DNA from: Macrostomum lignano
Lineage: Eukaryota
DNA length: 27,612 nt
Assembly (NCBI GenBank): GCA_002269645.1
Contig: NIVC01005056.1
Location: 1 to 27,612, forward strand
Reading direction: 5' to 3'
The stretch's first letter is position 1. Each line of letters begins with the position of its first letter. The translations under genes were made by a program, and so were the position numbers. This document shows positions 1 to 27,612 of the stretch, piece by piece. The notes below the pieces were generated by a model. It was not told where the DNA came from and searched no databases. It saw only the letters and a program-made list of their open reading frames with translations.

Positions 1-2
1 AT

Positions 3-5497: not shown

Positions 5498-5507
5498 AAT
5501 AAATAAA
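5498..5507 (+). promoter_or_regulatory. Candidate polyadenylation signal (overlapping AATAAA pair) for the TADA2B-like gene
   Basis: AATAAATAAA at 5498-5507 in AT-rich sequence downstream of the stop, with another AATAAA at 5080-5085. Such hexamers are common by chance here. Confidence 0.3.
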
Positions 5508-5736
5508 CTCTTCAAACGGAGATCTGTTCCATCTGGACGGAGGTTAATTGTTGTCCTCTGAGCTTGCTGTCCACAAGTCTGTATAGTTTATCAGCCCATG
5601 CTACTGTTTGCTACAATTAATTAAATTGCATACGGACGCTTCTAATATAACAAAACAAAAAAATATAGTTTTTTTACTTTTATTATTTGTTTATCTTGCA
5701 ATCGGGAAATTCAAAACACAGTCGGAATTTATTTTT

Positions 5737-7353: not shown

Positions 7354-10300
7354 ATGAAGACGTACTCAGCCGCCGTTCTCCTCGGATTAGCTCTGCTCAT
7401 CGCCACAGTAGCCTTCCTGCAGTACAACCGGCAGAACCAACGCAGCAACAAAACTAACAACTACTTGGCACAGGCGGCACAAACAACCAACAAAAAAAGC
7501 ACAATTTACAACAATTTTATGCAACACCCTACATCAACACTCAAAAACGTAAACAGGAACGATACAGTTTCTACTACAAAGAAAAAACACTATATACAAT
7601 CAAACGCTACCAAAGTGAAAAATAAAAGCAAACATAGAGTCAAAACAGACATTAAAAACCGATATTCACCAACTGTGCACAACCAAATACTTGCTAAAAA
7701 TTCTGCACCGCCGCCGACGGAGAGCAGCAGTACTACTGGCACCACCGACGAGGCAGTGACGCCGTCGGAGGAGTCGACTTTGACAACAGAGCCGTCGACT
7801 GCGGACTCTTCGTCGGCTACTATTAGCTCCTCGGCTTCACCGGAAGCGAGCACAGAAGCCAGCACAGAAGAGAGGACAACAGCCGGTCCCGAGGCTACTA
7901 CTGAGACTGCACCGCCGCCGACGGAGAGCAGCAGTACTACTGGCACCACCGACGAGGCAGTGACGCCGTCGGAGGAGTCGACTTTGACAACAGAGCCGTC
8001 GACTGCGGACTCTTCGTCGGCTACTATTAGCTCCTCGGCTTCACCGGAAGCGAGCACAGAAGCCAGCACAGAAGAGAGGACAACAGCCGGTCCCGAGGCT
8101 ACTACTGAGACTGCACCGCCGCCGACGGAGAGCAGCAGTACTACTGGCACCACCGACGAGGCAGTGACGCCGTCGGAGGAGTCGACTTTGACAACAGAGC
8201 CGTCGACTGCGGACTCTTCGTCGGCTACTATTAGCTCCTCGGCTTCACCGGAAGCGAGCACAGAAGCCAGCACAGAAGAGAGGACAACAGCCGGTCCCGA
8301 GGCTACTACTGAGACTGCACCGCCGCCGACGGAGAGCAGCAGTACTACTGGCACCACCGACGAGGCAGTGACGCCGTCGGAGGAGTCGACTTTGACAACA
8401 GAGCCGTCGACTGCGGACTCTTCGTCGGCTACTATTAGCTCCTCGGCTTCACCGGAAGCGAGCACAGAAGCCAGCACAGAAGAGAGGACAACAGCCGGTC
8501 CCGAGGCTACTACTGAGACTGCACCGCCGCCGACGGAGAGCAGCAGTACTACTGGCACCACCGACGAGGCAGTGACGCCGTCGGAGGAGTCGACTTTGAC
8601 AACAGAGCCGTCGACTGCGGACTCTTCGTCGGCTACTATTAGCTCCTCGGCTTCACCGGAAGCGAGCACAGAAGCCAGCACAGAAGAGAGGACAACAGCC
8701 GGTCCCGAGGCTACTACTGAGACTGCACCGCCGCCGACGGAGAGCAGCAGTACTACTGGCACCACCGACGAGGCAGTGACGCCGTCGGAGGAGTCGACTT
8801 TGACAACAGAGCCGTCGACTGCGGACTCTTCGTCGGCTACTATTAGCTCCTCGGCTTCACCGGAAGCGAGCACAGAAGCCAGCACAGAAGAGAGGACAAC
8901 AGCCGGTCCCGAGGCTACTACTGAGACTGCACCGCCGCCGACGGAGAGCAGCAGTACTACTGGCACCACCGACGAGGCAGTGACGCCGTCGGAGGAGTCG
9001 ACTTTGACAACAGAGCCGTCGACTGCGGACTCTTCGTCGGCTACTATTAGCTCCTCGGCTTCACCGGAAGCGAGCACAGAAGCCAGCACAGAAGAGAGGA
9101 CAACAGCCGGTCCCGAGGCTACTACTGAGACTGCACCGCCGCCGACGGAGAGCAGCAGTACTACTGGCACCACCGACGAGGCAGTGACGCCGTCGGAGGA
9201 GTCGACTTTGACAACAGAGCCGTCGACTGCGGACTCTTCGTCGGCTACTATTAGCTCCTCGGCTTCACCGGAAGCGAGCACAGAAGCCAGCACAGAAGAG
9301 AGGACAACAGCCGGTCCCGAGGCTACTACTGAGACTGCACCGCCGCCGACGGAGAGCAGCAGTACTACTGGCACCACCGACGAGGCAGTGACGCCGTCGG
9401 AGGAGTCGACTTTGACAACAGAGCCGTCGACTGCGGACTCTTCGTCGGCTACTATTAGCTCCTCGGCTTCACCGGAAGCGAGCACAGAAGCCAGCACAGA
9501 AGAGAGGACAACAGCCGGTCCCGAGGCTACTACTGAGACTGCACCGCCGCCGACGGAGAGCAGCAGTACTACTGGCACCACCGACGAGGCAGTGACGCCG
9601 TCGGAGGAGTCGACTTTGACAACAGAGCCGTCGACTGCGGACTCTTCGTCGGCTACTATTAGCTCCTCGGCTTCACCGGAAGCGAGCACAGAAGCCAGCA
9701 CAGAAGAGAGGACAACAGCCGGTCCCGAGGCTACTACTGAGACTGCACCGCCGCCGACGGAGAGCAGCAGTACTACTGGCACCACCGACGAGGCAGTGAC
9801 GCCGTCGGAGGAGTCGACTTTGACAACAGAGCCGTCGACTGCGGACTCTTCGTCGGCTACTATTAGCTCCTCGGCTTCACCGGAAGCGAGCACAGAAGCC
9901 AGCACAGAAGAGAGGACAACAGCCGGTCCCGAGGCTACTACTGAGACTGCACCGCCGCCGACGGAGAGCAGCAGTACTACTGGCACCACCGACGAGGCAG
10001 TGACGCCGTCGGAGGAGTCGACTTTGACAACAGAGCCGTCGACTGCGGACTCTTCGTCGGCTACTATTAGCTCCTCGGCTTCACCGGAAGCGAGCACAGA
10101 AGCCAGCACAGAAGAGAGGACAACAGCCGGTCCCGAGGCTACTACTGAGACTGCACCGCCGCCGACGGAGAGCAGCAGTACTACTGGCACCACCGACGAG
10201 GCAGTGACGCCGTCGGAGGAGTCGACTTTGACAACAGAGCCGTCGACTGCGGACTCTTCGTCGGCTACTATTAGCTCCTCGGCTTCACCGGAAGCGAGCA

Positions 10301-13300
10301 CAGAAGCCAGCACAGAAGAGAGGACAACAGCCGGTCCCGAGGCTACTACTGAGACTGCACCGCCGCCGACGGAGAGCAGCAGTACTACTGGCACCACCGA
10401 CGAGGCAGTGACGCCGTCGGAGGAGTCGACTTTGACAACAGAGCCGTCGACTGCGGACTCTTCGTCGGCTACTATTAGCTCCTCGGCTTCACCGGAAGCG
10501 AGCACAGAAGCCAGCACAGAAGAGAGGACAACAGCCGGTCCCGAGGCTACTACTGAGACTGCACCGCCGCCGACGGAGAGCAGCAGTACTACTGGCACCA
10601 CCGACGAGGCAGTGACGCCGTCGGAGGAGTCGACTTTGACAACAGAGCCGTCGACTGCGGACTCTTCGTCGGCTACTATTAGCTCCTCGGCTTCACCGGA
10701 AGCGAGCACAGAAGCCAGCACAGAAGAGAGGACAACAGCCGGTCCCGAGGCTACTACTGAGACTGCACCGCCGCCGACGGAGAGCAGCAGTACTACTGGC
10801 ACCACCGACGAGGCAGTGACGCCGTCGGAGGAGTCGACTTTGACAACAGAGCCGTCGACTGCGGACTCTTCGTCGGCTACTATTAGCTCCTCGGCTTCAC
10901 CGGAAGCGAGCACAGAAGCCAGCACAGAAGAGAGGACAACAGCCGGTCCCGAGGCTACTACTGAGACTGCACCGCCGCCGACGGAGAGCAGCAGTACTAC
11001 TGGCACCACCGACGAGGCAGTGACGCCGTCGGAGGAGTCGACTTTGACAACAGAGCCGTCGACTGCGGACTCTTCGTCGGCTACTATTAGCTCCTCGGCT
11101 TCACCGGAAGCGAGCACAGAAGCCAGCACAGAAGAGAGGACAACAGCCGGTCCCGAGGCTACTACTGAGACTGCACCGCCGCCGACGGAGAGCAGCAGTA
11201 CTACTGGCACCACCGACGAGGCAGTGACGCCGTCGGAGGAGTCGACTTTGACAACAGAGCCGTCGACTGCGGACTCTTCGTCGGCTACTATTAGCTCCTC
11301 GGCTTCACCGGAAGCGAGCACAGAAGCCAGCACAGAAGAGAGGACAACAGCCGGTCCCGAGGCTACTACTGAGACTGCACCGCCGCCGACGGAGAGCAGC
11401 AGTACTACTGGCACCACCGACGAGGCAGTGACGCCGTCGGAGGAGTCGACTTTGACAACAGAGCCGTCGACTGCGGACTCTTCGTCGGCTACTATTAGCT
11501 CCTCGGCTTCACCGGAAGCGAGCACAGAAGCCAGCACAGAAGAGAGGACAACAGCCGGTCCCGAGGCTACTACTGAGACTGCACCGCCGCCGACGGAGAG
11601 CAGCAGTACTACTGGCACCACCGACGAGGCAGTGACGCCGTCGGAGGAGTCGACTTTGACAACAGAGCCGTCGACTGCGGACTCTTCGTCGGCTACTATT
11701 AGCTCCTCGGCTTCACCGGAAGCGAGCACAGAAGCCAGCACAGAAGAGAGGACAACAGCCGGTCCCGAGGCTACTACTGAGACTGCACCGCCGCCGACGG
11801 AGAGCAGCAGTACTACTGGCACCACCGACGAGGCAGTGACGCCGTCGGAGGAGTCGACTTTGACAACAGAGCCGTCGACTGCGGACTCTTCGTCGGCTAC
11901 TATTAGCTCCTCGGCTTCACCGGAAGCGAGCACAGAAGCCAGCACAGAAGAGAGGACAACAGCCGGTCCCGAGGCTACTACTGAGACTGCACCGCCGCCG
12001 ACGGAGAGCAGCAGTACTACTGGCACCACCGACGAGGCAGTGACGCCGTCGGAGGAGTCGACTTTGACAACAGAGCCGTCGACTGCGGACTCTTCGTCGG
12101 CTACTATTAGCTCCTCGGCTTCACCGGAAGCGAGCACAGAAGCCAGCACAGAAGAGAGGACAACAGCCGGTCCCGAGGCTACTACTGAGACTGCACCGCC
12201 GCCGACGGAGAGCAGCAGTACTACTGGCACCACCGACGAGGCAGTGACGCCGTCGGAGGAGTCGACTTTGACAACAGAGCCGTCGACTGCGGACTCTTCG
12301 TCGGCTACTATTAGCTCCTCGGCTTCACCGGAAGCGAGCACAGAAGCCAGCACAGAAGAGAGGACAACAGCCGGTCCCGAGGCTACTACTGAGACTGCAC
12401 CGCCGCCGACGGAGAGCAGCAGTACTACTGGCACCACCGACGAGGCAGTGACGCCGTCGGAGGAGTCGACTTTGACAACAGAGCCGTCGACTGCGGACTC
12501 TTCGTCGGCTACTATTAGCTCCTCGGCTTCACCGGAAGCGAGCACAGAAGCCAGCACAGAAGAGAGGACAACAGCCGGTCCCGAGGCTACTACTGAGACT
12601 GCACCGCCGCCGACGGAGAGCAGCAGTACTACTGGCACCACCGACGAGGCAGTGACGCCGTCGGAGGAGTCGACTTTGACAACAGAGCCGTCGACTGCGG
12701 ACTCTTCGTCGGCTACTATTAGCTCCTCGGCTTCACCGGAAGCGAGCACAGAAGCCAGCACAGAAGAGAGGACAACAGCCGGTCCCGAGGCTACTACTGA
12801 GACTGCACCGCCGCCGACGGAGAGCAGCAGTACTACTGGCACCACCGACGAGGCAGTGACGCCGTCGGAGGAGTCGACTTTGACAACAGAGCCGTCGACT
12901 GCGGACTCTTCGTCGGCTACTATTAGCTCCTCGGCTTCACCGGAAGCGAGCACAGAAGCCAGCACAGAAGAGAGGACAACAGCCGGTCCCGAGGCTACTA
13001 CTGAGACTGCACCGCCGCCGACGGAGAGCAGCAGTACTACTGGCACCACCGACGAGGCAGTGACGCCGTCGGAGGAGTCGACTTTGACAACAGAGCCGTC
13101 GACTGCGGACTCTTCGTCGGCTACTATTAGCTCCTCGGCTTCACCGGAAGCGAGCACAGAAGCCAGCACAGAAGAGAGGACAACAGCCGGTCCCGAGGCT
13201 ACTACTGAGACTGCACCGCCGCCGACGGAGAGCAGCAGTACTACTGGCACCACCGACGAGGCAGTGACGCCGTCGGAGGAGTCGACTTTGACAACAGAGC

Positions 13301-16300
13301 CGTCGACTGCGGACTCTTCGTCGGCTACTATTAGCTCCTCGGCTTCACCGGAAGCGAGCACAGAAGCCAGCACAGAAGAGAGGACAACAGCCGGTCCCGA
13401 GGCTACTACTGAGACTGCACCGCCGCCGACGGAGAGCAGCAGTACTACTGGCACCACCGACGAGGCAGTGACGCCGTCGGAGGAGTCGACTTTGACAACA
13501 GAGCCGTCGACTGCGGACTCTTCGTCGGCTACTATTAGCTCCTCGGCTTCACCGGAAGCGAGCACAGAAGCCAGCACAGAAGAGAGGACAACAGCCGGTC
13601 CCGAGGCTACTACTGAGACTGCACCGCCGCCGACGGAGAGCAGCAGTACTACTGGCACCACCGACGAGGCAGTGACGCCGTCGGAGGAGTCGACTTTGAC
13701 AACAGAGCCGTCGACTGCGGACTCTTCGTCGGCTACTATTAGCTCCTCGGCTTCACCGGAAGCGAGCACAGAAGCCAGCACAGAAGAGAGGACAACAGCC
13801 GGTCCCGAGGCTACTACTGAGACTGCACCGCCGCCGACGGAGAGCAGCAGTACTACTGGCACCACCGACGAGGCAGTGACGCCGTCGGAGGAGTCGACTT
13901 TGACAACAGAGCCGTCGACTGCGGACTCTTCGTCGGCTACTATTAGCTCCTCGGCTTCACCGGAAGCGAGCACAGAAGCCAGCACAGAAGAGAGGACAAC
14001 AGCCGGTCCCGAGGCTACTACTGAGACTGCACCGCCGCCGACGGAGAGCAGCAGTACTACTGGCACCACCGACGAGGCAGTGACGCCGTCGGAGGAGTCG
14101 ACTTTGACAACAGAGCCGTCGACTGCGGACTCTTCGTCGGCTACTATTAGCTCCTCGGCTTCACCGGAAGCGAGCACAGAAGCCAGCACAGAAGAGAGGA
14201 CAACAGCCGGTCCCGAGGCTACTACTGAGACTGCACCGCCGCCGACGGAGAGCAGCAGTACTACTGGCACCACCGACGAGGCAGTGACGCCGTCGGAGGA
14301 GTCGACTTTGACAACAGAGCCGTCGACTGCGGACTCTTCGTCGGCTACTATTAGCTCCTCGGCTTCACCGGAAGCGAGCACAGAAGCCAGCACAGAAGAG
14401 AGGACAACAGCCGGTCCCGAGGCTACTACTGAGACTGCACCGCCGCCGACGGAGAGCAGCAGTACTACTGGCACCACCGACGAGGCAGTGACGCCGTCGG
14501 AGGAGTCGACTTTGACAACAGAGCCGTCGACTGCGGACTCTTCGTCGGCTACTATTAGCTCCTCGGCTTCACCGGAAGCGAGCACAGAAGCCAGCACAGA
14601 AGAGAGGACAACAGCCGGTCCCGAGGCTACTACTGAGACTGCACCGCCGCCGACGGAGAGCAGCAGTACTACTGGCACCACCGACGAGGCAGTGACGCCG
14701 TCGGAGGAGTCGACTTTGACAACAGAGCCGTCGACTGCGGACTCTTCGTCGGCTACTATTAGCTCCTCGGCTTCACCGGAAGCGAGCACAGAAGCCAGCA
14801 CAGAAGAGAGGACAACAGCCGGTCCCGAGGCTACTACTGAGACTGCACCGCCGCCGACGGAGAGCAGCAGTACTACTGGCACCACCGACGAGGCAGTGAC
14901 GCCGTCGGAGGAGTCGACTTTGACAACAGAGCCGTCGACTGCGGACTCTTCGTCGGCTACTATTAGCTCCTCGGCTTCACCGGAAGCGAGCACAGAAGCC
15001 AGCACAGAAGAGAGGACAACAGCCGGTCCCGAGGCTACTACTGAGACTGCACCGCCGCCGACGGAGAGCAGCAGTACTACTGGCACCACCGACGAGGCAG
15101 TGACGCCGTCGGAGGAGTCGACTTTGACAACAGAGCCGTCGACTGCGGACTCTTCGTCGGCTACTATTAGCTCCTCGGCTTCACCGGAAGCGAGCACAGA
15201 AGCCAGCACAGAAGAGAGGACAACAGCCGGTCCCGAGGCTACTACTGAGACTGCACCGCCGCCGACGGAGAGCAGCAGTACTACTGGCACCACCGACGAG
15301 GCAGTGACGCCGTCGGAGGAGTCGACTTTGACAACAGAGCCGTCGACTGCGGACTCTTCGTCGGCTACTATTAGCTCCTCGGCTTCACCGGAAGCGAGCA
15401 CAGAAGCCAGCACAGAAGAGAGGACAACAGCCGGTCCCGAGGCTACTACTGAGACTGCACCGCCGCCGACGGAGAGCAGCAGTACTACTGGCACCACCGA
15501 CGAGGCAGTGACGCCGTCGGAGGAGTCGACTTTGACAACAGAGCCGTCGACTGCGGACTCTTCGTCGGCTACTATTAGCTCCTCGGCTTCACCGGAAGCG
15601 AGCACAGAAGCCAGCACAGAAGAGAGGACAACAGCCGGTCCCGAGGCTACTACTGAGACTGCACCGCCGCCGACGGAGAGCAGCAGTACTACTGGCACCA
15701 CCGACGAGGCAGTGACGCCGTCGGAGGAGTCGACTTTGACAACAGAGCCGTCGACTGCGGACTCTTCGTCGGCTACTATTAGCTCCTCGGCTTCACCGGA
15801 AGCGAGCACAGAAGCCAGCACAGAAGAGAGGACAACAGCCGGTCCCGAGGCTACTACTGAGACTGCACCGCCGCCGACGGAGAGCAGCAGTACTACTGGC
15901 ACCACCGACGAGGCAGTGACGCCGTCGGAGGAGTCGACTTTGACAACAGAGCCGTCGACTGCGGACTCTTCGTCGGCTACTATTAGCTCCTCGGCTTCAC
16001 CGGAAGCGAGCACAGAAGCCAGCACAGAAGAGAGGACAACAGCCGGTCCCGAGGCTACTACTGAGACTGCACCGCCGCCGACGGAGAGCAGCAGTACTAC
16101 TGGCACCACCGACGAGGCAGTGACGCCGTCGGAGGAGTCGACTTTGACAACAGAGCCGTCGACTGCGGACTCTTCGTCGGCTACTATTAGCTCCTCGGCT
16201 TCACCGGAAGCGAGCACAGAAGCCAGCACAGAAGAGAGGACAACAGCCGGTCCCGAGGCTACTACTGAGACTGCACCGCCGCCGACGGAGAGCAGCAGTA

Positions 16301-19300
16301 CTACTGGCACCACCGACGAGGCAGTGACGCCGTCGGAGGAGTCGACTTTGACAACAGAGCCGTCGACTGCGGACTCTTCGTCGGCTACTATTAGCTCCTC
16401 GGCTTCACCGGAAGCGAGCACAGAAGCCAGCACAGAAGAGAGGACAACAGCCGGTCCCGAGGCTACTACTGAGACTGCACCGCCGCCGACGGAGAGCAGC
16501 AGTACTACTGGCACCACCGACGAGGCAGTGACGCCGTCGGAGGAGTCGACTTTGACAACAGAGCCGTCGACTGCGGACTCTTCGTCGGCTACTATTAGCT
16601 CCTCGGCTTCACCGGAAGCGAGCACAGAAGCCAGCACAGAAGAGAGGACAACAGCCGGTCCCGAGGCTACTACTGAGACTGCACCGCCGCCGACGGAGAG
16701 CAGCAGTACTACTGGCACCACCGACGAGGCAGTGACGCCGTCGGAGGAGTCGACTTTGACAACAGAGCCGTCGACTGCGGACTCTTCGTCGGCTACTATT
16801 AGCTCCTCGGCTTCACCGGAAGCGAGCACAGAAGCCAGCACAGAAGAGAGGACAACAGCCGGTCCCGAGGCTACTACTGAGACTGCACCGCCGCCGACGG
16901 AGAGCAGCAGTACTACTGGCACCACCGACGAGGCAGTGACGCCGTCGGAGGAGTCGACTTTGACAACAGAGCCGTCGACTGCGGACTCTTCGTCGGCTAC
17001 TATTAGCTCCTCGGCTTCACCGGAAGCGAGCACAGAAGCCAGCACAGAAGAGAGGACAACAGCCGGTCCCGAGGCTACTACTGAGACTGCACCGCCGCCG
17101 ACGGAGAGCAGCAGTACTACTGGCACCACCGACGAGGCAGTGACGCCGTCGGAGGAGTCGACTTTGACAACAGAGCCGTCGACTGCGGACTCTTCGTCGG
17201 CTACTATTAGCTCCTCGGCTTCACCGGAAGCGAGCACAGAAGCCAGCACAGAAGAGAGGACAACAGCCGGTCCCGAGGCTACTACTGAGACTGCACCGCC
17301 GCCGACGGAGAGCAGCAGTACTACTGGCACCACCGACGAGGCAGTGACGCCGTCGGAGGAGTCGACTTTGACAACAGAGCCGTCGACTGCGGACTCTTCG
17401 TCGGCTACTATTAGCTCCTCGGCTTCACCGGAAGCGAGCACAGAAGCCAGCACAGAAGAGAGGACAACAGCCGGTCCCGAGGCTACTACTGAGACTGCAC
17501 CGCCGCCGACGGAGAGCAGCAGTACTACTGGCACCACCGACGAGGCAGTGACGCCGTCGGAGGAGTCGACTTTGACAACAGAGCCGTCGACTGCGGACTC
17601 TTCGTCGGCTACTATTAGCTCCTCGGCTTCACCGGAAGCGAGCACAGAAGCCAGCACAGAAGAGAGGACAACAGCCGGTCCCGAGGCTACTACTGAGACT
17701 GCACCGCCGCCGACGGAGAGCAGCAGTACTACTGGCACCACCGACGAGGCAGTGACGCCGTCGGAGGAGTCGACTTTGACAACAGAGCCGTCGACTGCGG
17801 ACTCTTCGTCGGCTACTATTAGCTCCTCGGCTTCACCGGAAGCGAGCACAGAAGCCAGCACAGAAGAGAGGACAACAGCCGGTCCCGAGGCTACTACTGA
17901 GACTGCACCGCCGCCGACGGAGAGCAGCAGTACTACTGGCACCACCGACGAGGCAGTGACGCCGTCGGAGGAGTCGACTTTGACAACAGAGCCGTCGACT
18001 GCGGACTCTTCGTCGGCTACTATTAGCTCCTCGGCTTCACCGGAAGCGAGCACAGAAGCCAGCACAGAAGAGAGGACAACAGCCGGTCCCGAGGCTACTA
18101 CTGAGACTGCACCGCCGCCGACGGAGAGCAGCAGTACTACTGGCACCACCGACGAGGCAGTGACGCCGTCGGAGGAGTCGACTTTGACAACAGAGCCGTC
18201 GACTGCGGACTCTTCGTCGGCTACTATTAGCTCCTCGGCTTCACCGGAAGCGAGCACAGAAGCCAGCACAGAAGAGAGGACAACAGCCGGTCCCGAGGCT
18301 ACTACTGAGACTGCACCGCCGCCGACGGAGAGCAGCAGTACTACTGGCACCACCGACGAGGCAGTGACGCCGTCGGAGGAGTCGACTTTGACAACAGAGC
18401 CGTCGACTGCGGACTCTTCGTCGGCTACTATTAGCTCCTCGGCTTCACCGGAAGCGAGCACAGAAGCCAGCACAGAAGAGAGGACAACAGCCGGTCCCGA
18501 GGCTACTACTGAGACTGCACCGCCGCCGACGGAGAGCAGCAGTACTACTGGCACCACCGACGAGGCAGTGACGCCGTCGGAGGAGTCGACTTTGACAACA
18601 GAGCCGTCGACTGCGGACTCTTCGTCGGCTACTATTAGCTCCTCGGCTTCACCGGAAGCGAGCACAGAAGCCAGCACAGAAGAGAGGACAACAGCCGGTC
18701 CCGAGGCTACTACTGAGACTGCACCGCCGCCGACGGAGAGCAGCAGTACTACTGGCACCACCGACGAGGCAGTGACGCCGTCGGAGGAGTCGACTTTGAC
18801 AACAGAGCCGTCGACTGCGGACTCTTCGTCGGCTACTATTAGCTCCTCGGCTTCACCGGAAGCGAGCACAGAAGCCAGCACAGAAGAGAGGACAACAGCC
18901 GGTCCCGAGGCTACTACTGAGACTGCACCGCCGCCGACGGAGAGCAGCAGTACTACTGGCACCACCGACGAGGCAGTGACGCCGTCGGAGGAGTCGACTT
19001 TGACAACAGAGCCGTCGACTGCGGACTCTTCGTCGGCTACTATTAGCTCCTCGGCTTCACCGGAAGCGAGCACAGAAGCCAGCACAGAAGAGAGGACAAC
19101 AGCCGGTCCCGAGGCTACTACTGAGACTGCACCGCCGCCGACGGAGAGCAGCAGTACTACTGGCACCACCGACGAGGCAGTGACGCCGTCGGAGGAGTCG
19201 ACTTTGACAACAGAGCCGTCGACTGCGGACTCTTCGTCGGCTACTATTAGCTCCTCGGCTTCACCGGAAGCGAGCACAGAAGCCAGCACAGAAGAGAGGA

Positions 19301-21366
19301 CAACAGCCGGTCCCGAGGCTACTACTGAGACTGCACCGCCGCCGACGGAGAGCAGCAGTACTACTGGCACCACCGACGAGGCAGTGACGCCGTCGGAGGA
19401 GTCGACTTTGACAACAGAGCCGTCGACTGCGGACTCTTCGTCGGCTACTATTAGCTCCTCGGCTTCACCGGAAGCGAGCACAGAAGCCAGCACAGAAGAG
19501 AGGACAACAGCCGGTCCCGAGGCTACTACTGAGACTGCACCGCCGCCGACGGAGAGCAGCAGTACTACTGGCACCACCGACGAGGCAGTGACGCCGTCGG
19601 AGGAGTCGACTTTGACAACAGAGCCGTCGACTGCGGACTCTTCGTCGGCTACTATTAGCTCCTCGGCTTCACCGGAAGCGAGCACAGAAGCCAGCACAGA
19701 AGAGAGGACAACAGCCGGTCCCGAGGCTACTACTGAGACTGCACCGCCGCCGACGGAGAGCAGCAGTACTACTGGCACCACCGACGAGGCAGTGACGCCG
19801 TCGGAGGAGTCGACTTTGACAACAGAGCCGTCGACTGCGGACTCTTCGTCGGCTACTATTAGCTCCTCGGCTTCACCGGAAGCGAGCACAGAAGCCAGCA
19901 CAGAAGAGAGGACAACAGCCGGTCCCGAGGCTACTACTGAGACTGCACCGCCGCCGACGGAGAGCAGCAGTACTACTGGCACCACCGACGAGGCAGTGAC
20001 GCCGTCGGAGGAGTCGACTTTGACAACAGAGCCGTCGACTGCGGACTCTTCGTCGGCTACTATTAGCTCCTCGGCTTCACCGGAAGCGAGCACAGAAGCC
20101 AGCACAGAAGAGAGGACAACAGCCGGTCCCGAGGCTACTACTGAGACTGCACCGCCGCCGACGGAGAGCAGCAGTACTACTGGCACCACCGACGAGGCAG
20201 TGACGCCGTCGGAGGAGTCGACTTTGACAACAGAGCCGTCGACTGCGGACTCTTCGTCGGCTACTATTAGCTCCTCGGCTTCACCGGAAGCGAGCACAGA
20301 AGCCAGCACAGAAGAGAGGACAACAGCCGGTCCCGAGGCTACTACTGAGACTGCACCGCCGCCGACGGAGAGCAGCAGTACTACTGGCACCACCGACGAG
20401 GCAGTGACGCCGTCGGAGGAGTCGACTTTGACAACAGAGCCGTCGACTGCGGACTCTTCGTCGGCTACTATTAGCTCCTCGGCTTCACCGGAAGCGAGCA
20501 CAGAAGCCAGCACAGAAGAGAGGACAACAGCCGGTCCCGAGGCTACTACTGAGACTGCACCGCCGCCGACGGAGAGCAGCAGTACTACTGGCACCACCGA
20601 CGAGGCAGTGACGCCGTCGGAGGAGTCGACTTTGACAACAGAGCCGTCGACTGCGGACTCTTCGTCGGCTACTATTAGCTCCTCGGCTTCACCGGAAGCG
20701 AGCACAGAAGCCAGCACAGAAGAGAGGACAACAGCCGGTCCCGAGGCTACTACTGAGACTGCACCGCCGCCGACGGAGAGCAGCAGTACTACTGGCACCA
20801 CCGACGAGGCAGTGACGCCGTCGGAGGAGTCGACTTTGACAACAGAGCCGTCGACTGCGGACTCTTCGTCGGCTACTATTAGCTCCTCGGCTTCACCGGA
20901 AGCGAGCACAGAAGCCAGCACAGAAGAGAGGACAACAGCCGGTCCCGAGGCTACTACTGAGACTGCACCGCCGCCGACGGAGAGCAGCAGTACTACTGGC
21001 ACCACCGACGAGGCAGTGACGCCGTCGGAGGAGTCGACTTTGACAACAGAGCCGTCGACTGCGGACTCTTCGTCGGCTACTATTAGCTCCTCGGCTTCAC
21101 CGGAAGCGAGCACAGAAGCCAGCACAGAAGAGAGGACAACAGCCGGTCCCGAGGCTACTACTGAGACTGCACCGCCGCCGACGGAGAGCAGCAGTACTAC
21201 TGGCACCACCGACGAGGCAGTGACGCCGTCGGAGGAGTCGACTTTGACAACAGAGCCGTCGACTGCGGACTCTTCGTCGGCTACTATTAGCTCCTCGGCT
21301 TCACCGGAAGCGAGCACAGAAGCCAGCAGAAGAGAGGACAACAGCCGGTCCCGAGGCTACTACTGA
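7354..21366 (+). CDS. Giant secreted or membrane-anchored mucin-like (PTS/Glu-rich) protein; intact ORF portion (4670 aa)
   Basis: ATG at 7354 with hydrophobic N-terminus MKTYSAAVLLGLALLIATVAFL. A K/N/T-rich linker with four N-x-S/T sequons runs in frame into the 68-aa repeats at 7705. The unit has 15 S, 18 T, 11 E, 9 A, 7 P and no Cys or aromatic residues, and uses mixed synonymous Ser/Thr codons. The stop at 21364-21366 follows a 2-nt deletion and is probably not the true end. Confidence 0.75.
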   Translation: MKTYSAAVLLGLALLIATVAFLQYNRQNQRSNKTNNYLAQAAQTTNKKSTIYNNFMQHPTSTLKNVNRNDTVSTTKKKHYIQSNATKVKNKSKHRVKTDIKNRYSPTVHNQILAKNSAPPPTESSSTTGTTDEAVTPSEESTLTTEPSTADSSSATISSSASPEASTEASTEERTTAGPEATTETAPPPTESSSTTGTTDEAVTPSEESTLTTEPSTADSSSATISSSASPEASTEASTEERTTAGPEATTETAPPPTESSSTTGTTDEAVTPSEESTLTTEPSTADSSSATISSSASPEASTEASTEERTTAGPEATTETAPPPTESSSTTGTTDEAVTPSEESTLTTEPSTADSSSATISSSASPEASTEASTEERTTAGPEATTETAPPPTESSSTTGTTDEAVTPSEESTLTTEPSTADSSSATISSSASPEASTEASTEERTTAGPEATTETAPPPTESSSTTGTTDEAVTPSEESTLTTEPSTADSSSATISSSASPEASTEASTEERTTAGPEATTETAPPPTESSSTTGTTDEAVTPSEESTLTTEPSTADSSSATISSSASPEASTEASTEERTTAGPEATTETAPPPTESSSTTGTTDEAVTPSEESTLTTEPSTADSSSATISSSASPEASTEASTEERTTAGPEATTETAPPPTESSSTTGTTDEAVTPSEESTLTTEPSTADSSSATISSSASPEASTEASTEERTTAGPEATTETAPPPTESSSTTGTTDEAVTPSEESTLTTEPSTADSSSATISSSASPEASTEASTEERTTAGPEATTETAPPPTESSSTTGTTDEAVTPSEESTLTTEPSTADSSSATISSSASPEASTEASTEERTTAGPEATTETAPPPTESSSTTGTTDEAVTPSEESTLTTEPSTADSSSATISSSASPEASTEASTEERTTAGPEATTETAPPPTESSSTTGTTDEAVTPSEESTLTTEPSTADSSSATISSSASPEASTEASTEERTTAGPEATTETAPPPTESSSTTGTTDEAVTPSEESTLTTEPSTADSSSATISSSASPEASTEASTEERTTAGPEATTETAPPPTESSSTTGTTDEAVTPSEESTLTTEPSTADSSSATISSSASPEASTEASTEERTTAGPEATTETAPPPTESSSTTGTTDEAVTPSEESTLTTEPSTADSSSATISSSASPEASTEASTEERTTAGPEATTETAPPPTESSSTTGTTDEAVTPSEESTLTTEPSTADSSSATISSSASPEASTEASTEERTTAGPEATTETAPPPTESSSTTGTTDEAVTPSEESTLTTEPSTADSSSATISSSASPEASTEASTEERTTAGPEATTETAPPPTESSSTTGTTDEAVTPSEESTLTTEPSTADSSSATISSSASPEASTEASTEERTTAGPEATTETAPPPTESSSTTGTTDEAVTPSEESTLTTEPSTADSSSATISSSASPEASTEASTEERTTAGPEATTETAPPPTESSSTTGTTDEAVTPSEESTLTTEPSTADSSSATISSSASPEASTEASTEERTTAGPEATTETAPPPTESSSTTGTTDEAVTPSEESTLTTEPSTADSSSATISSSASPEASTEASTEERTTAGPEATTETAPPPTESSSTTGTTDEAVTPSEESTLTTEPSTADSSSATISSSASPEASTEASTEERTTAGPEATTETAPPPTESSSTTGTTDEAVTPSEESTLTTEPSTADSSSATISSSASPEASTEASTEERTTAGPEATTETAPPPTESSSTTGTTDEAVTPSEESTLTTEPSTADSSSATISSSASPEASTEASTEERTTAGPEATTETAPPPTESSSTTGTTDEAVTPSEESTLTTEPSTADSSSATISSSASPEASTEASTEERTTAGPEATTETAPPPTESSSTTGTTDEAVTPSEESTLTTEPSTADSSSATISSSASPEASTEASTEERTTAGPEATTETAPPPTESSSTTGTTDEAVTPSEESTLTTEPSTADSSSATISSSASPEASTEASTEERTTAGPEATTETAPPPTESSSTTGTTDEAVTPSEESTLTTEPSTADSSSATISSSASPEASTEASTEERTTAGPEATTETAPPPTESSSTTGTTDEAVTPSEESTLTTEPSTADSSSATISSSASPEASTEASTEERTTAGPEATTETAPPPTESSSTTGTTDEAVTPSEESTLTTEPSTADSSSATISSSASPEASTEASTEERTTAGPEATTETAPPPTESSSTTGTTDEAVTPSEESTLTTEPSTADSSSATISSSASPEASTEASTEERTTAGPEATTETAPPPTESSSTTGTTDEAVTPSEESTLTTEPSTADSSSATISSSASPEASTEASTEERTTAGPEATTETAPPPTESSSTTGTTDEAVTPSEESTLTTEPSTADSSSATISSSASPEASTEASTEERTTAGPEATTETAPPPTESSSTTGTTDEAVTPSEESTLTTEPSTADSSSATISSSASPEASTEASTEERTTAGPEATTETAPPPTESSSTTGTTDEAVTPSEESTLTTEPSTADSSSATISSSASPEASTEASTEERTTAGPEATTETAPPPTESSSTTGTTDEAVTPSEESTLTTEPSTADSSSATISSSASPEASTEASTEERTTAGPEATTETAPPPTESSSTTGTTDEAVTPSEESTLTTEPSTADSSSATISSSASPEASTEASTEERTTAGPEATTETAPPPTESSSTTGTTDEAVTPSEESTLTTEPSTADSSSATISSSASPEASTEASTEERTTAGPEATTETAPPPTESSSTTGTTDEAVTPSEESTLTTEPSTADSSSATISSSASPEASTEASTEERTTAGPEATTETAPPPTESSSTTGTTDEAVTPSEESTLTTEPSTADSSSATISSSASPEASTEASTEERTTAGPEATTETAPPPTESSSTTGTTDEAVTPSEESTLTTEPSTADSSSATISSSASPEASTEASTEERTTAGPEATTETAPPPTESSSTTGTTDEAVTPSEESTLTTEPSTADSSSATISSSASPEASTEASTEERTTAGPEATTETAPPPTESSSTTGTTDEAVTPSEESTLTTEPSTADSSSATISSSASPEASTEASTEERTTAGPEATTETAPPPTESSSTTGTTDEAVTPSEESTLTTEPSTADSSSATISSSASPEASTEASTEERTTAGPEATTETAPPPTESSSTTGTTDEAVTPSEESTLTTEPSTADSSSATISSSASPEASTEASTEERTTAGPEATTETAPPPTESSSTTGTTDEAVTPSEESTLTTEPSTADSSSATISSSASPEASTEASTEERTTAGPEATTETAPPPTESSSTTGTTDEAVTPSEESTLTTEPSTADSSSATISSSASPEASTEASTEERTTAGPEATTETAPPPTESSSTTGTTDEAVTPSEESTLTTEPSTADSSSATISSSASPEASTEASTEERTTAGPEATTETAPPPTESSSTTGTTDEAVTPSEESTLTTEPSTADSSSATISSSASPEASTEASTEERTTAGPEATTETAPPPTESSSTTGTTDEAVTPSEESTLTTEPSTADSSSATISSSASPEASTEASTEERTTAGPEATTETAPPPTESSSTTGTTDEAVTPSEESTLTTEPSTADSSSATISSSASPEASTEASTEERTTAGPEATTETAPPPTESSSTTGTTDEAVTPSEESTLTTEPSTADSSSATISSSASPEASTEASTEERTTAGPEATTETAPPPTESSSTTGTTDEAVTPSEESTLTTEPSTADSSSATISSSASPEASTEASTEERTTAGPEATTETAPPPTESSSTTGTTDEAVTPSEESTLTTEPSTADSSSATISSSASPEASTEASTEERTTAGPEATTETAPPPTESSSTTGTTDEAVTPSEESTLTTEPSTADSSSATISSSASPEASTEASTEERTTAGPEATTETAPPPTESSSTTGTTDEAVTPSEESTLTTEPSTADSSSATISSSASPEASTEASTEERTTAGPEATTETAPPPTESSSTTGTTDEAVTPSEESTLTTEPSTADSSSATISSSASPEASTEASTEERTTAGPEATTETAPPPTESSSTTGTTDEAVTPSEESTLTTEPSTADSSSATISSSASPEASTEASTEERTTAGPEATTETAPPPTESSSTTGTTDEAVTPSEESTLTTEPSTADSSSATISSSASPEASTEASTEERTTAGPEATTETAPPPTESSSTTGTTDEAVTPSEESTLTTEPSTADSSSATISSSASPEASTEASTEERTTAGPEATTETAPPPTESSSTTGTTDEAVTPSEESTLTTEPSTADSSSATISSSASPEASTEASTEERTTAGPEATTETAPPPTESSSTTGTTDEAVTPSEESTLTTEPSTADSSSATISSSASPEASTEASTEERTTAGPEATTETAPPPTESSSTTGTTDEAVTPSEESTLTTEPSTADSSSATISSSASPEASTEASTEERTTAGPEATTETAPPPTESSSTTGTTDEAVTPSEESTLTTEPSTADSSSATISSSASPEASTEASTEERTTAGPEATTETAPPPTESSSTTGTTDEAVTPSEESTLTTEPSTADSSSATISSSASPEASTEASTEERTTAGPEATTETAPPPTESSSTTGTTDEAVTPSEESTLTTEPSTADSSSATISSSASPEASTEASRREDNSRSRGYY

Positions 21367-24300
21367 GACTGCACCGCCGCCGACGGAGAGCAGCAGTACT
21401 ACTGGCACCACCGACGAGGCAGTGACGCCGTCGGAGGAGTCGACTTTGACAACAGAGCCGTCGACTGCGGACTCTTCGTCGGCTACTATTAGCTCCTCGG
21501 CTTCACCGGAAGCGAGCACAGAAGCCAGCACAGAAGAGAGGACAACAGCCGGTCCCGAGGCTACTACTGAGACTGCACCGCCGCCGACGGAGAGCAGCAG
21601 TACTACTGGCACCACCGACGAGGCAGTGACGCCGTCGGAGGAGTCGACTTTGACAACAGAGCCGTCGACTGCGGACTCTTCGTCGGCTACTATTAGCTCC
21701 TCGGCTTCACCGGAAGCGAGCACAGAAGCCAGCACAGAAGAGAGGACAACAGCCGGTCCCGAGGCTACTACTGAGACTGCACCGCCGCCGACGGAGAGCA
21801 GCAGTACTACTGGCACCACCGACGAGGCAGTGACGCCGTCGGAGGAGTCGACTTTGACAACAGAGCCGTCGACTGCGGACTCTTCGTCGGCTACTATTAG
21901 CTCCTCGGCTTCACCGGAAGCGAGCACAGAAGCCAGCACAGAAGAGAGGACAACAGCCGGTCCCGAGGCTACTACTGAGACTGCACCGCCGCCGACGGAG
22001 AGCAGCAGTACTACTGGCACCACCGACGAGGCAGTGACGCCGTCGGAGGAGTCGACTTTGACAACAGAGCCGTCGACTGCGGACTCTTCGTCGGCTACTA
22101 TTAGCTCCTCGGCTTCACCGGAAGCGAGCACAGAAGCCAGCACAGAAGAGAGGACAACAGCCGGTCCCGAGGCTACTACTGAGACTGCACCGCCGCCGAC
22201 GGAGAGCAGCAGTACTACTGGCACCACCGACGAGGCAGTGACGCCGTCGGAGGAGTCGACTTTGACAACAGAGCCGTCGACTGCGGACTCTTCGTCGGCT
22301 ACTATTAGCTCCTCGGCTTCACCGGAAGCGAGCACAGAAGCCAGCACAGAAGAGAGGACAACAGCCGGTCCCGAGGCTACTACTGAGACTGCACCGCCGC
22401 CGACGGAGAGCAGCAGTACTACTGGCACCACCGACGAGGCAGTGACGCCGTCGGAGGAGTCGACTTTGACAACAGAGCCGTCGACTGCGGACTCTTCGTC
22501 GGCTACTATTAGCTCCTCGGCTTCACCGGAAGCGAGCACAGAAGCCAGCACAGAAGAGAGGACAACAGCCGGTCCCGAGGCTACTACTGAGACTGCACCG
22601 CCGCCGACGGAGAGCAGCAGTACTACTGGCACCACCGACGAGGCAGTGACGCCGTCGGAGGAGTCGACTTTGACAACAGAGCCGTCGACTGCGGACTCTT
22701 CGTCGGCTACTATTAGCTCCTCGGCTTCACCGGAAGCGAGCACAGAAGCCAGCACAGAACAACAGCCGGTCCCGAGGCTACTACTGAGACTGCACCGCCG
22801 CCGACGGAGAGCAGCAGTACTACTGGCACCACCGACGAGGCAGTGACGCCGTCGGAGGAGTCGACTTTGACAACAGAGCCGTCGACTGCGGACTCTTCGT
22901 CGGCTACTATTAGCTCCTCGGCTTCACCGGAAGCGAGCACAGAAGCCAGCACAGAAGAGAGGACAACAGCCGGTCCCGAGGCTACTACTGAGACTGCACC
23001 GCCGCCGACGGAGAGCAGCAGTACTACTGGCACCACCGACGAGGCAGTGACGCCGTCGGAGGAGTCGACTTTGACAACAGAGCCGTCGACTGCGGACTCT
23101 TCGTCGGCTACTATTAGCTCCTCGGCTTCACCGGAAGCGAGCACAGAAGCCAGCACAGAAGAGAGGACAACAGCCGGTCCCGAGGCTACTACTGAGACTG
23201 CACCGCCGCCGACGGAGAGCAGCAGTACTACTGGCACCACCGACGAGGCAGTGACGCCGTCGGAGGAGTCGACTTTGACAACAGAGCCGTCGACTGCGGA
23301 CTCTTCGTCGGCTACTATTAGCTCCTCGGCTTCACCGGAAGCGAGCACAGAAGCCAGCACAGAAGAGAGGACAACAGCCGGTCCCGAGGCTACTACTGAG
23401 ACTGCACCGCCGCCGACGGAGAGCAGCAGTACTACTGGCACCACCGACGAGGCAGTGACGCCGTCGGAGGAGTCGACTTTGACAACAGAGCCGTCGACTG
23501 CGGACTCTTCGTCGGCTACTATTAGCTCCTCGGCTTCACCGGAAGCGAGCACAGAAGAGCACAGAAGACAACAGCCGGTCCCGAGGCTACTACTGAGACT
23601 GCACCGCCGCCGACGGAGAGCAGCAGTACTACTGGCACCACCGACGAGGCAGTGACGCCGTCGGAGGAGTCGACTTTGACAACAGAGCCGTCGACTGCGG
23701 ACTCTTCGTCGGCTACTATTAGCTCCTCGGCTTCACCGGAAGCGAGCACAGAAGCCAGCACAGAAGAGAGGACAACAGCCGGTCCCGAGGCTACTACTGA
23801 GACTGCACCGCCGCCGACGGAGAGCAGCAGTACTACTGGCACCACCGACGAGGCAGTGACGCCGTCGGAGGAGTCGACTTTGACAACAGAGCCGTCGACT
23901 GCGGACTCTTCGTCGGCTACTATTAGCTCCTCGGCTTCACCGGAAGCGAGCACAGAAGCCAGCACAGAAGAGAGGACAACAGCCGGTCCCGAGGCTACTA
24001 CTGAGACTGCACCGCCGCCGACGGAGAGCAGCAGTACTACTGGCACCACCGACGAGGCAGTGACGCCGTCGGAGGAGTCGACTTTGACAACAGAGCCGTC
24101 GACTGCGGACTCTTCGTCGGCTACTATTAGCTCCTCGGCTTCACCGGAAGCGAGCACAGAAGCCAGCACAGAAGAGAGGACAACAGCCGGTCCCGAGGCT
24201 ACTACTGAGACTGCACCGCCGCCGACGGAGAGCAGCAGTACTACTGGCACCACCGACGAGGCAGTGACGCCGTCGGAGGAGTCGACTTTGACAACAGAGC

Positions 24301-27300
24301 CGTCGACTGCGGACTCTTCGTCGGCTACTATTAGCTCCTCGGCTTCACCGGAAGCGAGCACAGAAGCCAGCACAGAAGAGAGGACAACAGCCGGTCCCGA
24401 GGCTACTACTGAGACTGCACCGCCGCCGACGGAGAGCAGCAGTACTACTGGCACCACCGACGAGGCAGTGACGCCGTCGGAGGAGTCGACTTTGACAACA
24501 GAGCCGTCGACTGCGGACTCTTCGTCGGCTACTATTAGCTCCTCGGCTTCACCGGAAGCGAGCACAGAAGCCAGCACAGAAGAGAGGACAACAGCCGGTC
24601 CCGAGGCTACTACTGAGACTGCACCGCCGCCGACGGAGAGCAGCAGTACTACTGGCACCACCGACGAGGCAGTGACGCCGTCGGAGGAGTCGACTTTGAC
24701 AACAGAGCCGTCGACTGCGGACTCTTCGTCGGCTACTATTAGCTCCTCGGCTTCACCGGAAGCGAGCACAGAAGCCAGCACAGAAGAGAGCACAACAGCC
24801 GGTCCCGAGGCTACTACTGAGACTGCACCGCCGCCGACGGAGAGCAGCAGTACTACTGGCACCACCGACGAGGCAGTGACGCCGTCGGAGGAGTCGACTT
24901 TGACAACAGAGCCGTCGACTGCGGACTCTTCGTCGGCTACTATTAGCTCCTCGGCTTCACCGGAAGCGAGCACAGAAGAGAGACAACAGCCGGTCCCGAG
25001 GCTACTACTGAGACTGCACCGCCGCCGACGGAGAGCAGCAGTACTACTGGCACCACCGACGAGGCAGTGACGCCGTCGGAGGAGTCGACTTTGACAACAG
25101 AGCCGTCGACTGCGGACTCTTCGTCGGCTACTATTAGCTCCTCGGCTTCACCGGAAGCGAGCACAGAAGAGAGAGACAACAGCCGGTCCCGAGGCTACTA
25201 CTGAGACTGCACCGCCGCCGACGGAGAGCAGCAGTACTACTGGCACCACCGACGAGGCAGTGACGCCGTCGGAGGAGTCGACTTTGACAACAGAGCCGTC
25301 GACTGCGGACTCTTCGTCGGCTACTATTAGCTCCTCGGCTTCACCGGAAGCGAGCACAGAAGAAGAGAGGACAACAGCCGGTCCCGAGGCTACTACTGAG
25401 ACTGCACCGCCGCCGACGGAGAGCAGCAGTACTACTGGCACCACCGACGAGGCAGTGACGCCGTCGGAGGAGTCGACTTTGACAACAGAGCCGTCGACTG
25501 CGGACTCTTCGTCGGCTACTATTAGCTCCTCGGCTTCACCGGAAGAGCACAGAAGCCAGCACAGAAGAGAGGACAACAGCCGGTCCCGAGGCTACTACTG
25601 AGACTGCACCGCCGCCGACGGAGAGCAGCAGTACTACTGGCACCACCGACGAGGCAGTGACGCCGTCGGAGGAGTCGACTTTGACAACAGAGCCGTCGAC
25701 TGCGGACTCTTCGTCGGCTACTATTAGCTCCTCGGCTTCACCGGAAGCGAGCACAGAAGAGACACAACAGCCGGTCCCGAGGCTACTACTGAGACTGCAC
25801 CGCCGCCGACGGAGAGCAGCAGTACTACTGGCACCACCGACGAGGCAGTGACGCCGTCGGAGGAGTCGACTTTGACAACAGAGCCGTCGACTGCGGACTC
25901 TTCGTCGGCTACTATTAGCTCCTCGGCTTCACCGGAAGCGAGCACAGAAGAGAGGACAACAGCCGGTCCCGAGGCTACTACTGAGACTGCACCGCCGCCG
26001 ACGGAGAGCAGCAGTACTACTGGCACCACCGACGAGGCAGTGACGCCGTCGGAGGAGTCGACTTTGACAACAGAGCCGTCGACTGCGGACTCTTCGTCGG
26101 CTACTATTAGCTCCTCGGCTTCACCGGAAGCGAAGCAACAGAAGAGAGCACAACAGCCGGTCCGAGGCTACTACTGAGACTGCACCGCCGCCGACGGAGA
26201 GCAGCAGTACTACTGGCACCACCGACGAGGCAGTGACGCCGTCGGAGGAGTCGACTTTGACAACAGAGCCGTCGACTGCGGACTCTTCGTCGGCTACTAT
26301 TAGCTCCTCGGCTTCACCGGAAGCGAGCACAGAAGCCAGCACAGAAGAGACAACAGCCGGTCCGAGGCTACTACTGAGACTGCACCGCCGCCGACGGAGA
26401 GCAGCAGTACTACTGCACCACCGACGAGCAGTGACGCCGTCGAGGAGTCGACTTTGACAACAGAGCCGTCGACTGCGGACTCTTCGTCGCTACTATTAGC
26501 TCCTCGGCTTCACCGGAAGCGAGCACAGAAAGAGCACAACAGCCGTCCCGAGGCTACTACTGAGACTGCACCGCCGCCGACGGAGAGAGCAGTACTACTG
26601 GCACCACCGACGAGGCAGTGACGCCGTCGAGGAGTCGACTTTGACAACAGAGCCGTCGACTGCGGACTCTTCGTCGGCTACTATTAGCTCCTCGGCTTCA
26701 CCGAAGCGAGCACAGAAGAGAGGACAACAGCCGGTCCCGAGGCTACTACTGAGACTGCACCGCCGCCGACGGAGAGCAGCAGTACTACTGGCACCACCGA
26801 CGAGGCAGTGACGCCGTCGGAGGAGTCGACTTTGACAACAGAGCCGTCGACTGCGGACTCTTCGTCGGCTACTATTAGCTCCTCGGCTTCACCGGAAGCG
26901 AGCACAGAAAGAGAGCACAACAGCCGGTCCGAGGCTACTACTGAGACTGCACCGCCGCCGACGGAGAGCAGCAGTACTACTGGCACCACCGACGAGGCAG
27001 TGACGCCGTCGGAGGAGTCGACTTTGACAACAGAGCCGTCGACTGCGGACTCTTCGTCGGCTACTATTAGCTCCTCGGCTTCACCGGAACGAGCACAGAA
27101 GCCAGCACAGAAGAGAGGACAACAGCCGGTCCCGAGGCTACTACTGAGACTGCACCGCCGCCGACGGAGAGCAGCAGTACTACTGCACACCGACGAGGCA
27201 GTGACGCCGTCGGAGGAGTCGACTTTGACAACAGAGCCGTCGACTGCGGACTCTTCGTCGGCTACTATTAGCTCCTCGGCTTCACCGGAAGCGAGCACAG

Positions 27301-27612
27301 AAAGAGCACAAACAGCCGTCCCGAGGCTACTACTGAGACTGCACCGCCGCCGACGGAGAGCAGCAGTACTACTGGCACCACCGACGAGGCAGTGACGCGT
27401 CGGAGGAGTCGACTTTGACAACAGAGCCGTCGACTGCGGACTCTTCGTCGGCTACTATTAGCTCCTCGGCTTCACCGGAAGCGAGCACAGAAAGAGCACA
27501 ACAGCCGGTCCCGAGGCTACTACTGAGACTGCACCGCCGCCGACGGAGAGCAGCAGACTACTGGCACCACCGACGAGCAGTGACGCCGTCGGAGGAGTCG
27601 ACTTTGACAACA
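7703..27612 (+). repeat. 204-bp coding macrosatellite/VNTR, about 98 copies (APPPTESSSTTGTTDEAVTPSEESTLTTEPSTADSSSATISSSASPEASTEASTEERTTAGPEATTET)
   Basis: Line content recurs every 1020 nt (5 x 204). About 66 copies up to 21328 show no difference I could find by reading. The array runs off the window end. Confidence 0.99.
21328..27612 (+). other. Frameshift-interrupted continuation of the mucin repeat domain (likely consensus errors; C-terminus not in window)
   Basis: The same unit continues with indels at about 21328 (-2), 22759 (-7), 23557/23568, 24978, 25175, 25340, 25546, 25760, 25945 (-12, in frame) and 26135. Scattered 1-nt deletions follow after about 26400. Confidence 0.7.

Follow-up and report, generated by a model that had tools for sequence, protein, structure and literature searches.

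A probable gene for a giant, acidic mucin-like protein in the flatworm Macrostomum lignano

We analysed a 27,612-nucleotide stretch of Macrostomum lignano DNA (contig NIVC01005056.1, referred to below as the window) and found that the region from position 7354 to the window end is probably the 5′ part of a real, lineage-specific gene, intronless as far as it is seen, for a mucin-like secreted polyanion. The product would enter the secretory pathway through an N-terminal leader, and would continue with a head that is short, basic, fast-evolving and disordered; behind it, identical 68-amino-acid (68-aa) units rich in Pro, Thr, Ser and Glu would form a very long array. A preliminary description, made from the sequence alone, had proposed such a mucin-like secreted polyanion; this is still the best reading, and it has gained the support of a second in-frame copy and of a gene model based on RNA sequencing (RNA-seq).

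The open reading frame (ORF) starts at an ATG at 7354, with an in-frame stop upstream at 7291 (Table 1). Its first residues form a signal-like leader, which was parsed by hand into an n-region (MKTYS), an h-region (AAVLLGLALLI) and a c-region (ATVA) and has a Kyte-Doolittle 19-residue mean of up to 2.3; cleavage after Ala20 (T-V-A, then F), at an A-x-A-type site judged by hand, is possible. After the leader, the head has an isoelectric point (pI) of 10.7, a net charge of +17 and four N-glycosylation sequons, and no Cys occurs in it. The head is probably disordered, as modelled by AlphaFold for the head and one unit: the predicted local distance difference test (pLDDT) score is ~45–59, and the leader is the sole confidently modelled helix, being part of a long helix over residues 6–57 that has confidence over roughly the first 30 residues only. 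The 117-aa head enters the array in frame and is joined to the array's only open sense frame. Composition breaks sharply within this one ORF, with a GC content of 61% in the array and 57% in the leader versus 36% in the head beyond the leader (43% A). The head may have arisen recently, or from once non-coding sequence.

Tandem Repeats Finder (TRF) reported an array from 7703 to 27612 with a period of 204, 98.4 copies and 98% matches, as the sole array over that span. By splitting at an exact anchor we located 98 unit starts, so that units of 204 bp (68 aa) follow one another head-to-tail from 7703 to the window end, with a spacing of exactly 204 bp in 81 of the 97 unit intervals. In its one sense frame the unit translates as APPPTESSSTTGTTDEAVTPSEESTLTTEPSTADSSSATISSSASPEASTEASTEERTTAGPEATTET, which holds 18 Thr, 15 Ser, 11 Glu, 9 Ala, 7 Pro, 2 Gly and 2 Asp, while Val, Leu, Ile and Arg occur once; Cys, Asn, Lys and aromatic residues are absent from it. 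Each unit is thus 48.5% Ser+Thr and 10.3% Pro, carries 13 acidic residues versus one basic (net charge −12) and contains four S-x-E motifs. As a definition of a Pro/Thr/Ser (PTS) domain we used ~40% or more Ser+Thr and ~5% or more Pro, usually in tandem repeats, thresholds that are said to be those of Lang, Hansson and Samuelsson from 2007; with the above Ser+Thr and Pro content, at least 4,553 residues of the intact frame have the composition of such a domain. A Pfam scan of the head and two units found no domain in either, and in particular no vWD, C8 or TIL domain ahead of the repeats, and a sequence search of the Protein Data Bank (PDB) with the head and units gave zero matches. The preliminary description had the anatomy as we find it, a signal-like leader and a 117-aa head followed by acidic PTS-type repeats. 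Its 68-aa repeat of ~98 units was recovered both by TRF and by the anchor split, our recount agrees with its unit composition (49% Ser+Thr, 13 acidic residues to a single basic one, and a lack of Cys, Asn, Lys and aromatics), and the Pfam scan and the Cys-free head bear out its remark that no vWD or CysD domain precedes the repeats.

Relatives of the protein were searched for in public databases. An exhaustive phmmer search with the head and two units against 1.84 billion protein cluster representatives matched one protein, and none with the unit. This sole match, PAA59659.1 (85 aa, 89% identity to head residues 1–85, E = 9e-38), is the GenBank hypothetical protein BOX15_Mlig016747g2, partial, from M. 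lignano (assembly GCA_002269645.1), and its gene, located downstream of an ADA2 gene in synteny with the window, lies on contig NIVC01002244.1, whose end is 4 kb away. At this public locus (L001 below) the ATG and the leader are identical to those of the window, the head is open through all 117 codons and the 204-bp array is joined in the same phase, so that the array follows the same head in frame in both loci seen. The minisatellite series is also as in the window, with different copy numbers. The array of L001 runs for 19.5 units before the contig stops (98 in the window); no assembly seen spans the array, and the C-terminus lies past the end of this contig as well as of the window. Of the 19 complete L001 units, 13 match the window unit exactly and the consensus is identical, and the other units show 19 deleted bases, 11 inserted bases and 0 substitutions, piling up toward the contig end. 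About 85% of the M. lignano genome is present in three paralogous copies that differ by 2.2% overall and by 1.1% in coding sequence (PMC10733133), and the window most likely represents a further paralogue of the Mlig016747 locus.

The GenBank model shares its strand and its starting ATG with the frame described here and covers L001 positions 10001–10255 (window 7354–7608), where it stops without a stop codon at codon 85 while the frame goes on. The GenBank gene set was built from RNA-seq transcripts only (StringTie/TACO and TransDecoder), with repeat-overlapping transcripts removed (PMC5730564). Because the annotation of PAA59659.1 is RNA-seq-based, the head is transcribed on the + strand. The early end of the model probably arose when the annotation pipeline cut transcript boundaries or filtered repeats, and internal priming in the A-rich head (AAAGAAAAAACA, with AATAAA nearby) could also be its cause. 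The gene had been put forward as undescribed, which holds in part: its first 85 codons are already in GenBank as the Mlig016747g2 partial, and the repeats are unannotated. The comparison of unit and head with protein databases that had been suggested gave a relative of the head in M. lignano only and no protein with the unit. A word-indexed protein search with the head alone returned PAA59659.1 only, and with the head and two units it returned no match, its list of 8,000 candidates probably being swamped by low-complexity words. An exact protein look-up of the 4,670-aa ORF found no record. Back-translated scans of JGI metagenome contigs and 185,579 prokaryotic genomes recovered no relatives, and a prokaryotic or environmental source was rejected. 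The name 'Mlig016747' had no main-text mention in the literature searched, in which no M. lignano single-cell atlas was found either.

The intact part of the frame is closed by a 2-bp deletion in unit 67 that puts a stop in frame. Its mature, unglycosylated product was computed to have a mass of ~460 kDa, a pI of 4.05 and a net charge of ~−780. The earlier figure of more than 6,700 aa, if continuous, did not hold in this form, since ~45 indels need reading through to reach it and the intact ORF is 4,670 aa; the copy number of 98 is an assembly estimate, and the claimed length is an upper bound through assembly noise. Damage to the array within the window amounts to 43 deletion events, one insertion and one substitution type, the lone substitution being G173C (Arg to Thr), which recurs in 5 units. 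In units 67–84, 14 of the 18 units still match the consensus exactly, and 7-bp deletions occur in units 74 and 78; from 24823 to the window end there is damage in every unit. Single-base deletions fall mostly at GG or CC pairs, and deletions of 7–13 nt all lie within an internal AGCACAGAAG sub-repeat, clustering at ~12 nt. Most distal units have one STEA sub-repeat fewer, often with G173C, plus many 1–2-bp deletions in GG/CC runs, and TRF gives a period of 191 over 24771–27612; they look like a genuine in-frame ~192-bp variant under an overlay of small errors. Mutational decay would be expected to consist mainly of substitutions; here >90% of the damage is indels and it rises toward the end, which points to long-read consensus error. 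The frame breaks past codon 4,670 are thus most likely consensus errors of this kind, and the true protein is probably longer than 4,670 aa.

Alternatively, the gene could be real while the printed array is largely an assembly construct, with copy number, identity, order and variants all unreliable through collapse, expansion or polishing. We regard this as a possibility to be taken seriously, if one on the lesser side of even. The Mlig_3_7 assembly was made from PacBio continuous long reads (CLR) with Canu and polished with short reads by Pilon (PMC5730564), 93% of read pairs map at multiple loci (PMC10733133), and both copies either end or turn noisy inside the array, at very different unit numbers. 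On the other hand, shorter minisatellites in the window stayed heterogeneous through the same pipeline, and long reads of 10–20 kb do support arrays of such order. The two copies share one unit consensus, as homogenisation would allow; only ~1.5 differences would be expected, so this identity is not significant alone. It is likely that the length and identity of the array are to some degree an assembly artefact, which would alter the size of the gene, not its nature.

Divergence between the two copies was compared for the head and its surroundings. The unique flanks differ by 30 substitutions in 4,024 bp (0.75%) and the head by 15 in 349 bp (4.3%), a ~6-fold difference (Fisher p ~1e-6), with no indels in the head. 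Within the head's 117 aa, 13 codons changed (11 nonsynonymous and 2 synonymous), giving a ratio of nonsynonymous to synonymous substitution rates (dN/dS) of 1.39 by the Nei-Gojobori method. The changes spare the leader, with 0 of 81 nt substituted versus 15 of 268 in the rest of the head (chance roughly 0.02, from the counts), and judged by these sequences the leader looks to be under constraint. The head beyond the leader shows no purifying selection and is either an unconstrained spacer or diversifying. Positive selection on the head was set aside, as dN/dS is only 1.39 on 15 changes and dS is equally high in ADA2 exon B, where each of the 6 differences between the copies is synonymous (dS 0.047). 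The head divergence is explained equally well by relaxed constraint or by patchy divergence along the locus. Along window 1–7702 versus L001 1967–10349 divergence is uneven: the 5′ end carries no substitutions over 660 bp, the surroundings of the last ADA2 exon carry 7 over 367 bp, and the stretch upstream of the head carries 9 over 1,149 bp; such patchiness could result from mosaic gene conversion among subgenomes, or from local selection.

Several observations weigh against a real gene for a giant mucin-like protein. That a single unit has an open frame carries no significance, because one or more such frames occur in 59% of shuffled units; in the antisense direction, too, a frame (7590–21341, −) is stop-free over 4,583 codons, and two open frames of six are within chance for the composition of the array. 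The M. lignano genome is 15% simple or tandem repeat (PMC5730564), and the window contains six other minisatellite arrays, four of them with periods that are a multiple of 3, which together give a high prior for a non-coding array. The head past the leader evolves as if unconstrained, its 12.5 nonsynonymous to 2.5 synonymous changes equalling the neutral expectation. The public transcript model ends 94 nt short of the array, and no transcript seen links the head to the repeats; a search of supplements of PMC5816591, PMC7336406, PMC5730564 and PMC12896417 yielded no expression data for Mlig016747. The unit occurs in no protein among the 1.84 billion representatives, and no homologue was found in any other species.

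The open shuffled and antisense frames, the repeat-rich setting, the freely evolving head, the early end of the transcript model and the lack of a recorded protein with the unit would all fit an array that is a non-coding minisatellite or satellite with a chance open frame, with a head that is a short, weakly transcribed or chance ORF and with no giant protein at all. We consider this unlikely. The 116 codons after the ATG are open in A-rich sequence at P = 0.0016 (shuffles), the other five frames having 3–11 stops, and they start with a textbook leader, shared unchanged by the two copies, and run on in phase with the array at both loci. The neighbouring minisatellites are 82–92% homogeneous (one short array 100%) versus 100% over 66 long units here, and the codon choice of the unit (CCG, AGC/TCG, ACT/ACA, GAG) agrees with that of the neighbouring ADA2 exons. 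A real gene is indicated by the open head, the conserved leader, the in-phase junction in two copies and the transcript-based model at the same start, and also by a unit length and a recurrent 12-nt length variant that are both multiples of 3 and by the ADA2-like codon choice. The antisense frame was rejected as a gene in its own right, as it has no start in view, its product would be Val/Ser/Ala/Gly-rich and the annotated transcript is on the + strand.

The N-terminal segment might also be read as an uncleaved signal-anchor, which would make the protein a membrane-tethered glycocalyx mucin. The hydrophobic run from A6 to L22 measures 17 residues, at the upper end for cleaved leaders, R26, R30 and K33 follow it, and AlphaFold models one long helix up to residue 57, with confidence over roughly the first 30 residues. 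However, the small residues at −3 and −1 form a standard cleavage site after Ala20, and the excess of positive charge on the C-terminal flank would, if the anchor stayed uncleaved, tend to place the array in the cytosol, which would be odd for a PTS array; we find a tethered form rather doubtful and favour the secreted one.

Least probable of these alternatives, and improbable in our judgement, is that the frame breaks are real, so that the protein ends at 21366 (4,670 aa, ending in ...EASRREDNSRSRGYY) with decayed distal units or the locus is a pseudogene among three paralogues: the frame does break within 21167–21366 and repeatedly later, and with three paralogous copies of most of the genome one would be free to decay (PMC10733133), but the damage consists almost entirely of indels, mostly in GG/CC runs or the AGCACAGAAG sub-repeat, with one recurrent substitution variant only, most units just past the first break still match the consensus, and the public copy has like indel-only noise rising toward its contig end.

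PTS domains are typically densely O-glycosylated and form extended chains. By analogy, the array of the favoured secreted mucin-like protein, once translated and secreted, would be densely O-glycosylated and form an extended, strongly hydrated polyanion ~1 micrometre long. The role that we infer for it would be that of mucus, a surface coat or the matrix of a gland secretion, in which the basic head might pair electrostatically with the acidic arrays of other molecules and so serve granule packing or gel cross-linking. Core-1 O-glycans are present in M. lignano, where Mlig-ap2 is the target of peanut agglutinin (PNA) (PMC6410801). A far more specific role, which we think very improbable, is that of a self-interacting block polyampholyte (a head of +17 and a polyanion of −800 or more) that takes part in attachment and release by the duo-gland system. 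It might then act as the negatively charged substance of the releasing gland and displace the polycationic Mlig-ap1, or as an anti-adhesive coat that spares the worm's own surface. Heparin, a large polyanion, blocks M. lignano adhesion, and the releasing-gland substance is thought to be negatively charged (PMC6410801). A giant secreted polyanion would be an obvious, if wholly speculative, candidate for this substance; the same authors favour a small anion (PMC6410801).

Among known systems, the protein resembles PTS mucins, insect mucin-like and salivary glue proteins, and human tandem-repeat mucins with long units such as MUC17 or MUC6 in having a signal-like leader and a very long, single-exon, near-identical Pro/Thr/Ser array; PTS mucins are also variable-number-tandem-repeat-like (VNTR-like), disordered and without an enzymatic domain, as here. 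Most mucins owe their charge to sialic acid or sulphate, whereas here the backbone itself is acidic, with 13 Asp+Glu per 68 residues. The protein also differs from mucins in having no vWD/C8/TIL or Cys domains before the repeats, in its short basic head and in showing no sequence similarity to them, and the N-terminal vWD-C8-TIL arrangement that marks gel-forming mucins is absent. Long Ser-rich acidic repeats behind a signal peptide are likewise found in dentin phosphophoryn and in Leishmania proteophosphoglycans, to which the protein is unrelated in sequence; its repeats are dominated by Glu and Thr, rather than Asp-Ser-Ser or Ser only. By the same analogy, the four S-x-E motifs per unit could be sites for secretory kinases. 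The preliminary description had also raised phosphorylation, mineral binding and a part in adhesion or release, all of which are speculative. Within the same species, Mlig-ap1 and Mlig-ap2 are also giant, lineage-specific, secreted, repetitive proteins without homologues in NCBI nr (PMC6410801). Mlig-ap1 has very positive Lys/Arg-rich regions together with C-type lectin, vWD and EGF domains, in contrast to the acidic, domain-free protein described here, and Mlig-ap2 has vWD, TIL, LDLR and TSP-1 domains and repeats of 255 and 221 aa, in contrast to 68-aa units. Both are located on other scaffolds (scaf1170 and scaf3366), and identity with either one is ruled out by their published descriptions in terms of charge, domains, repeat length and scaffolds.

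If the above reading is true, an 85-residue hypothetical fragment in GenBank belongs to a protein that ranks among the largest and most acidic in a laboratory-model flatworm, and a backbone-acidic, domain-free type is added to the invertebrate mucin-like proteins. The protein would be a candidate constituent of the mucus, glycocalyx or gland secretions of flatworms, few protein cores of which have been described, and its function is directly testable, as M. lignano is amenable to RNA interference (RNAi), in situ hybridisation and transgenesis. The locus also illustrates how filters against repeat-overlapping transcripts, and contigs that break in arrays, conceal giant repeat proteins. Otherwise, this is an orphan gene that follows a familiar plan, with unusual backbone acidity and size, rather than a new kind of system.

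Table 1. Positions of the mucin-like gene, its neighbour and associated minisatellites (window coordinates unless L001 is given).
Feature	Position	Strand	Description
Longest intact frame	7354..21366	+	4,670 codons
Start codon and signal-like leader	7354..7413	+	MKTYSAAVLLGLALLIATVA; from hydropathy and by-hand parsing
Head residues 21–117	7414..7704	+	Basic, Asn/Lys/Thr/Gln-rich, low complexity
Units 1–66	7703..21166	+	204 bp / 68 aa each (APPPTESSSTTGTTDEAVTPSEESTLTTEPSTADSSSATISSSASPEASTEASTEERTTAGPEATTET); 100% DNA identity
Units 67–84	21167..24822	+	Consensus 204 bp except 3 frame-breaking deletions and 1 G173C
Units 85–98	24823..27612	+	Mostly ~192-bp (64-aa) variant, minus 12 nt; array exceeds window end
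Upstream region (presumed promoter and 5′ untranslated region)	6205..7353	+	Unique; 99.2% identity between copies
ADA2 exons	about 60–539, 1522–2034; coding stretches ~2640–3040, 3870–4144	+	Stop at 4144; exact borders approximate
ADA2 intron and 3′ minisatellites	666–1514, 2045–2491, 3039–3865, 4233–4950		Periods 30, 25, 21 and 24 bp
Equivalent minisatellites in L001	L001 2640–2809, 3340–4011, 4555–6016, 6384–7127		

The upstream 4 kb of the window (60–4144, +) is occupied by a spliced gene for the ADA2/TADA2 transcriptional adaptor, recognised by the Pfam domains ZZ_ADA2, Myb/SANT and TADA2A-like_3rd and by a best PDB match named 'Transcriptional adapter 2'. The GT-AG introns of this gene, together with an observed/expected CpG ratio (CpG o/e) of ~1 in the sequence, fit an invertebrate, unmethylated-looking eukaryote genome. 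The splice sites picked by hand for its first intron fail to give an in-frame junction. A word-indexed protein search with the ADA2 product returned no match. Rfam families, tRNAs and bacterial promoters were also scanned for in the upstream 8 kb, which gave nothing useful.

The introns and the 3′ region of the ADA2 gene consist almost wholly of minisatellites, the copy numbers of which, in the order of Table 1, are 27.6 versus 5.5, 18 versus 26.9, 39.4 versus 69.4 and 30.7 versus 31.7 in the window versus L001. The 21-bp array is open in phase with the last ADA2 exon, but the annotated product of L001, at 566 aa, is not long enough to contain it. The intergenic region that separates ADA2 from the mucin-like gene holds two adjoining 42-bp minisatellite families (window 5735–6185, L001 7916–8788) with the core GTCACTCAGCAGAC, present in 7.4 and 3.4 copies in the window versus 20.4 copies in L001.

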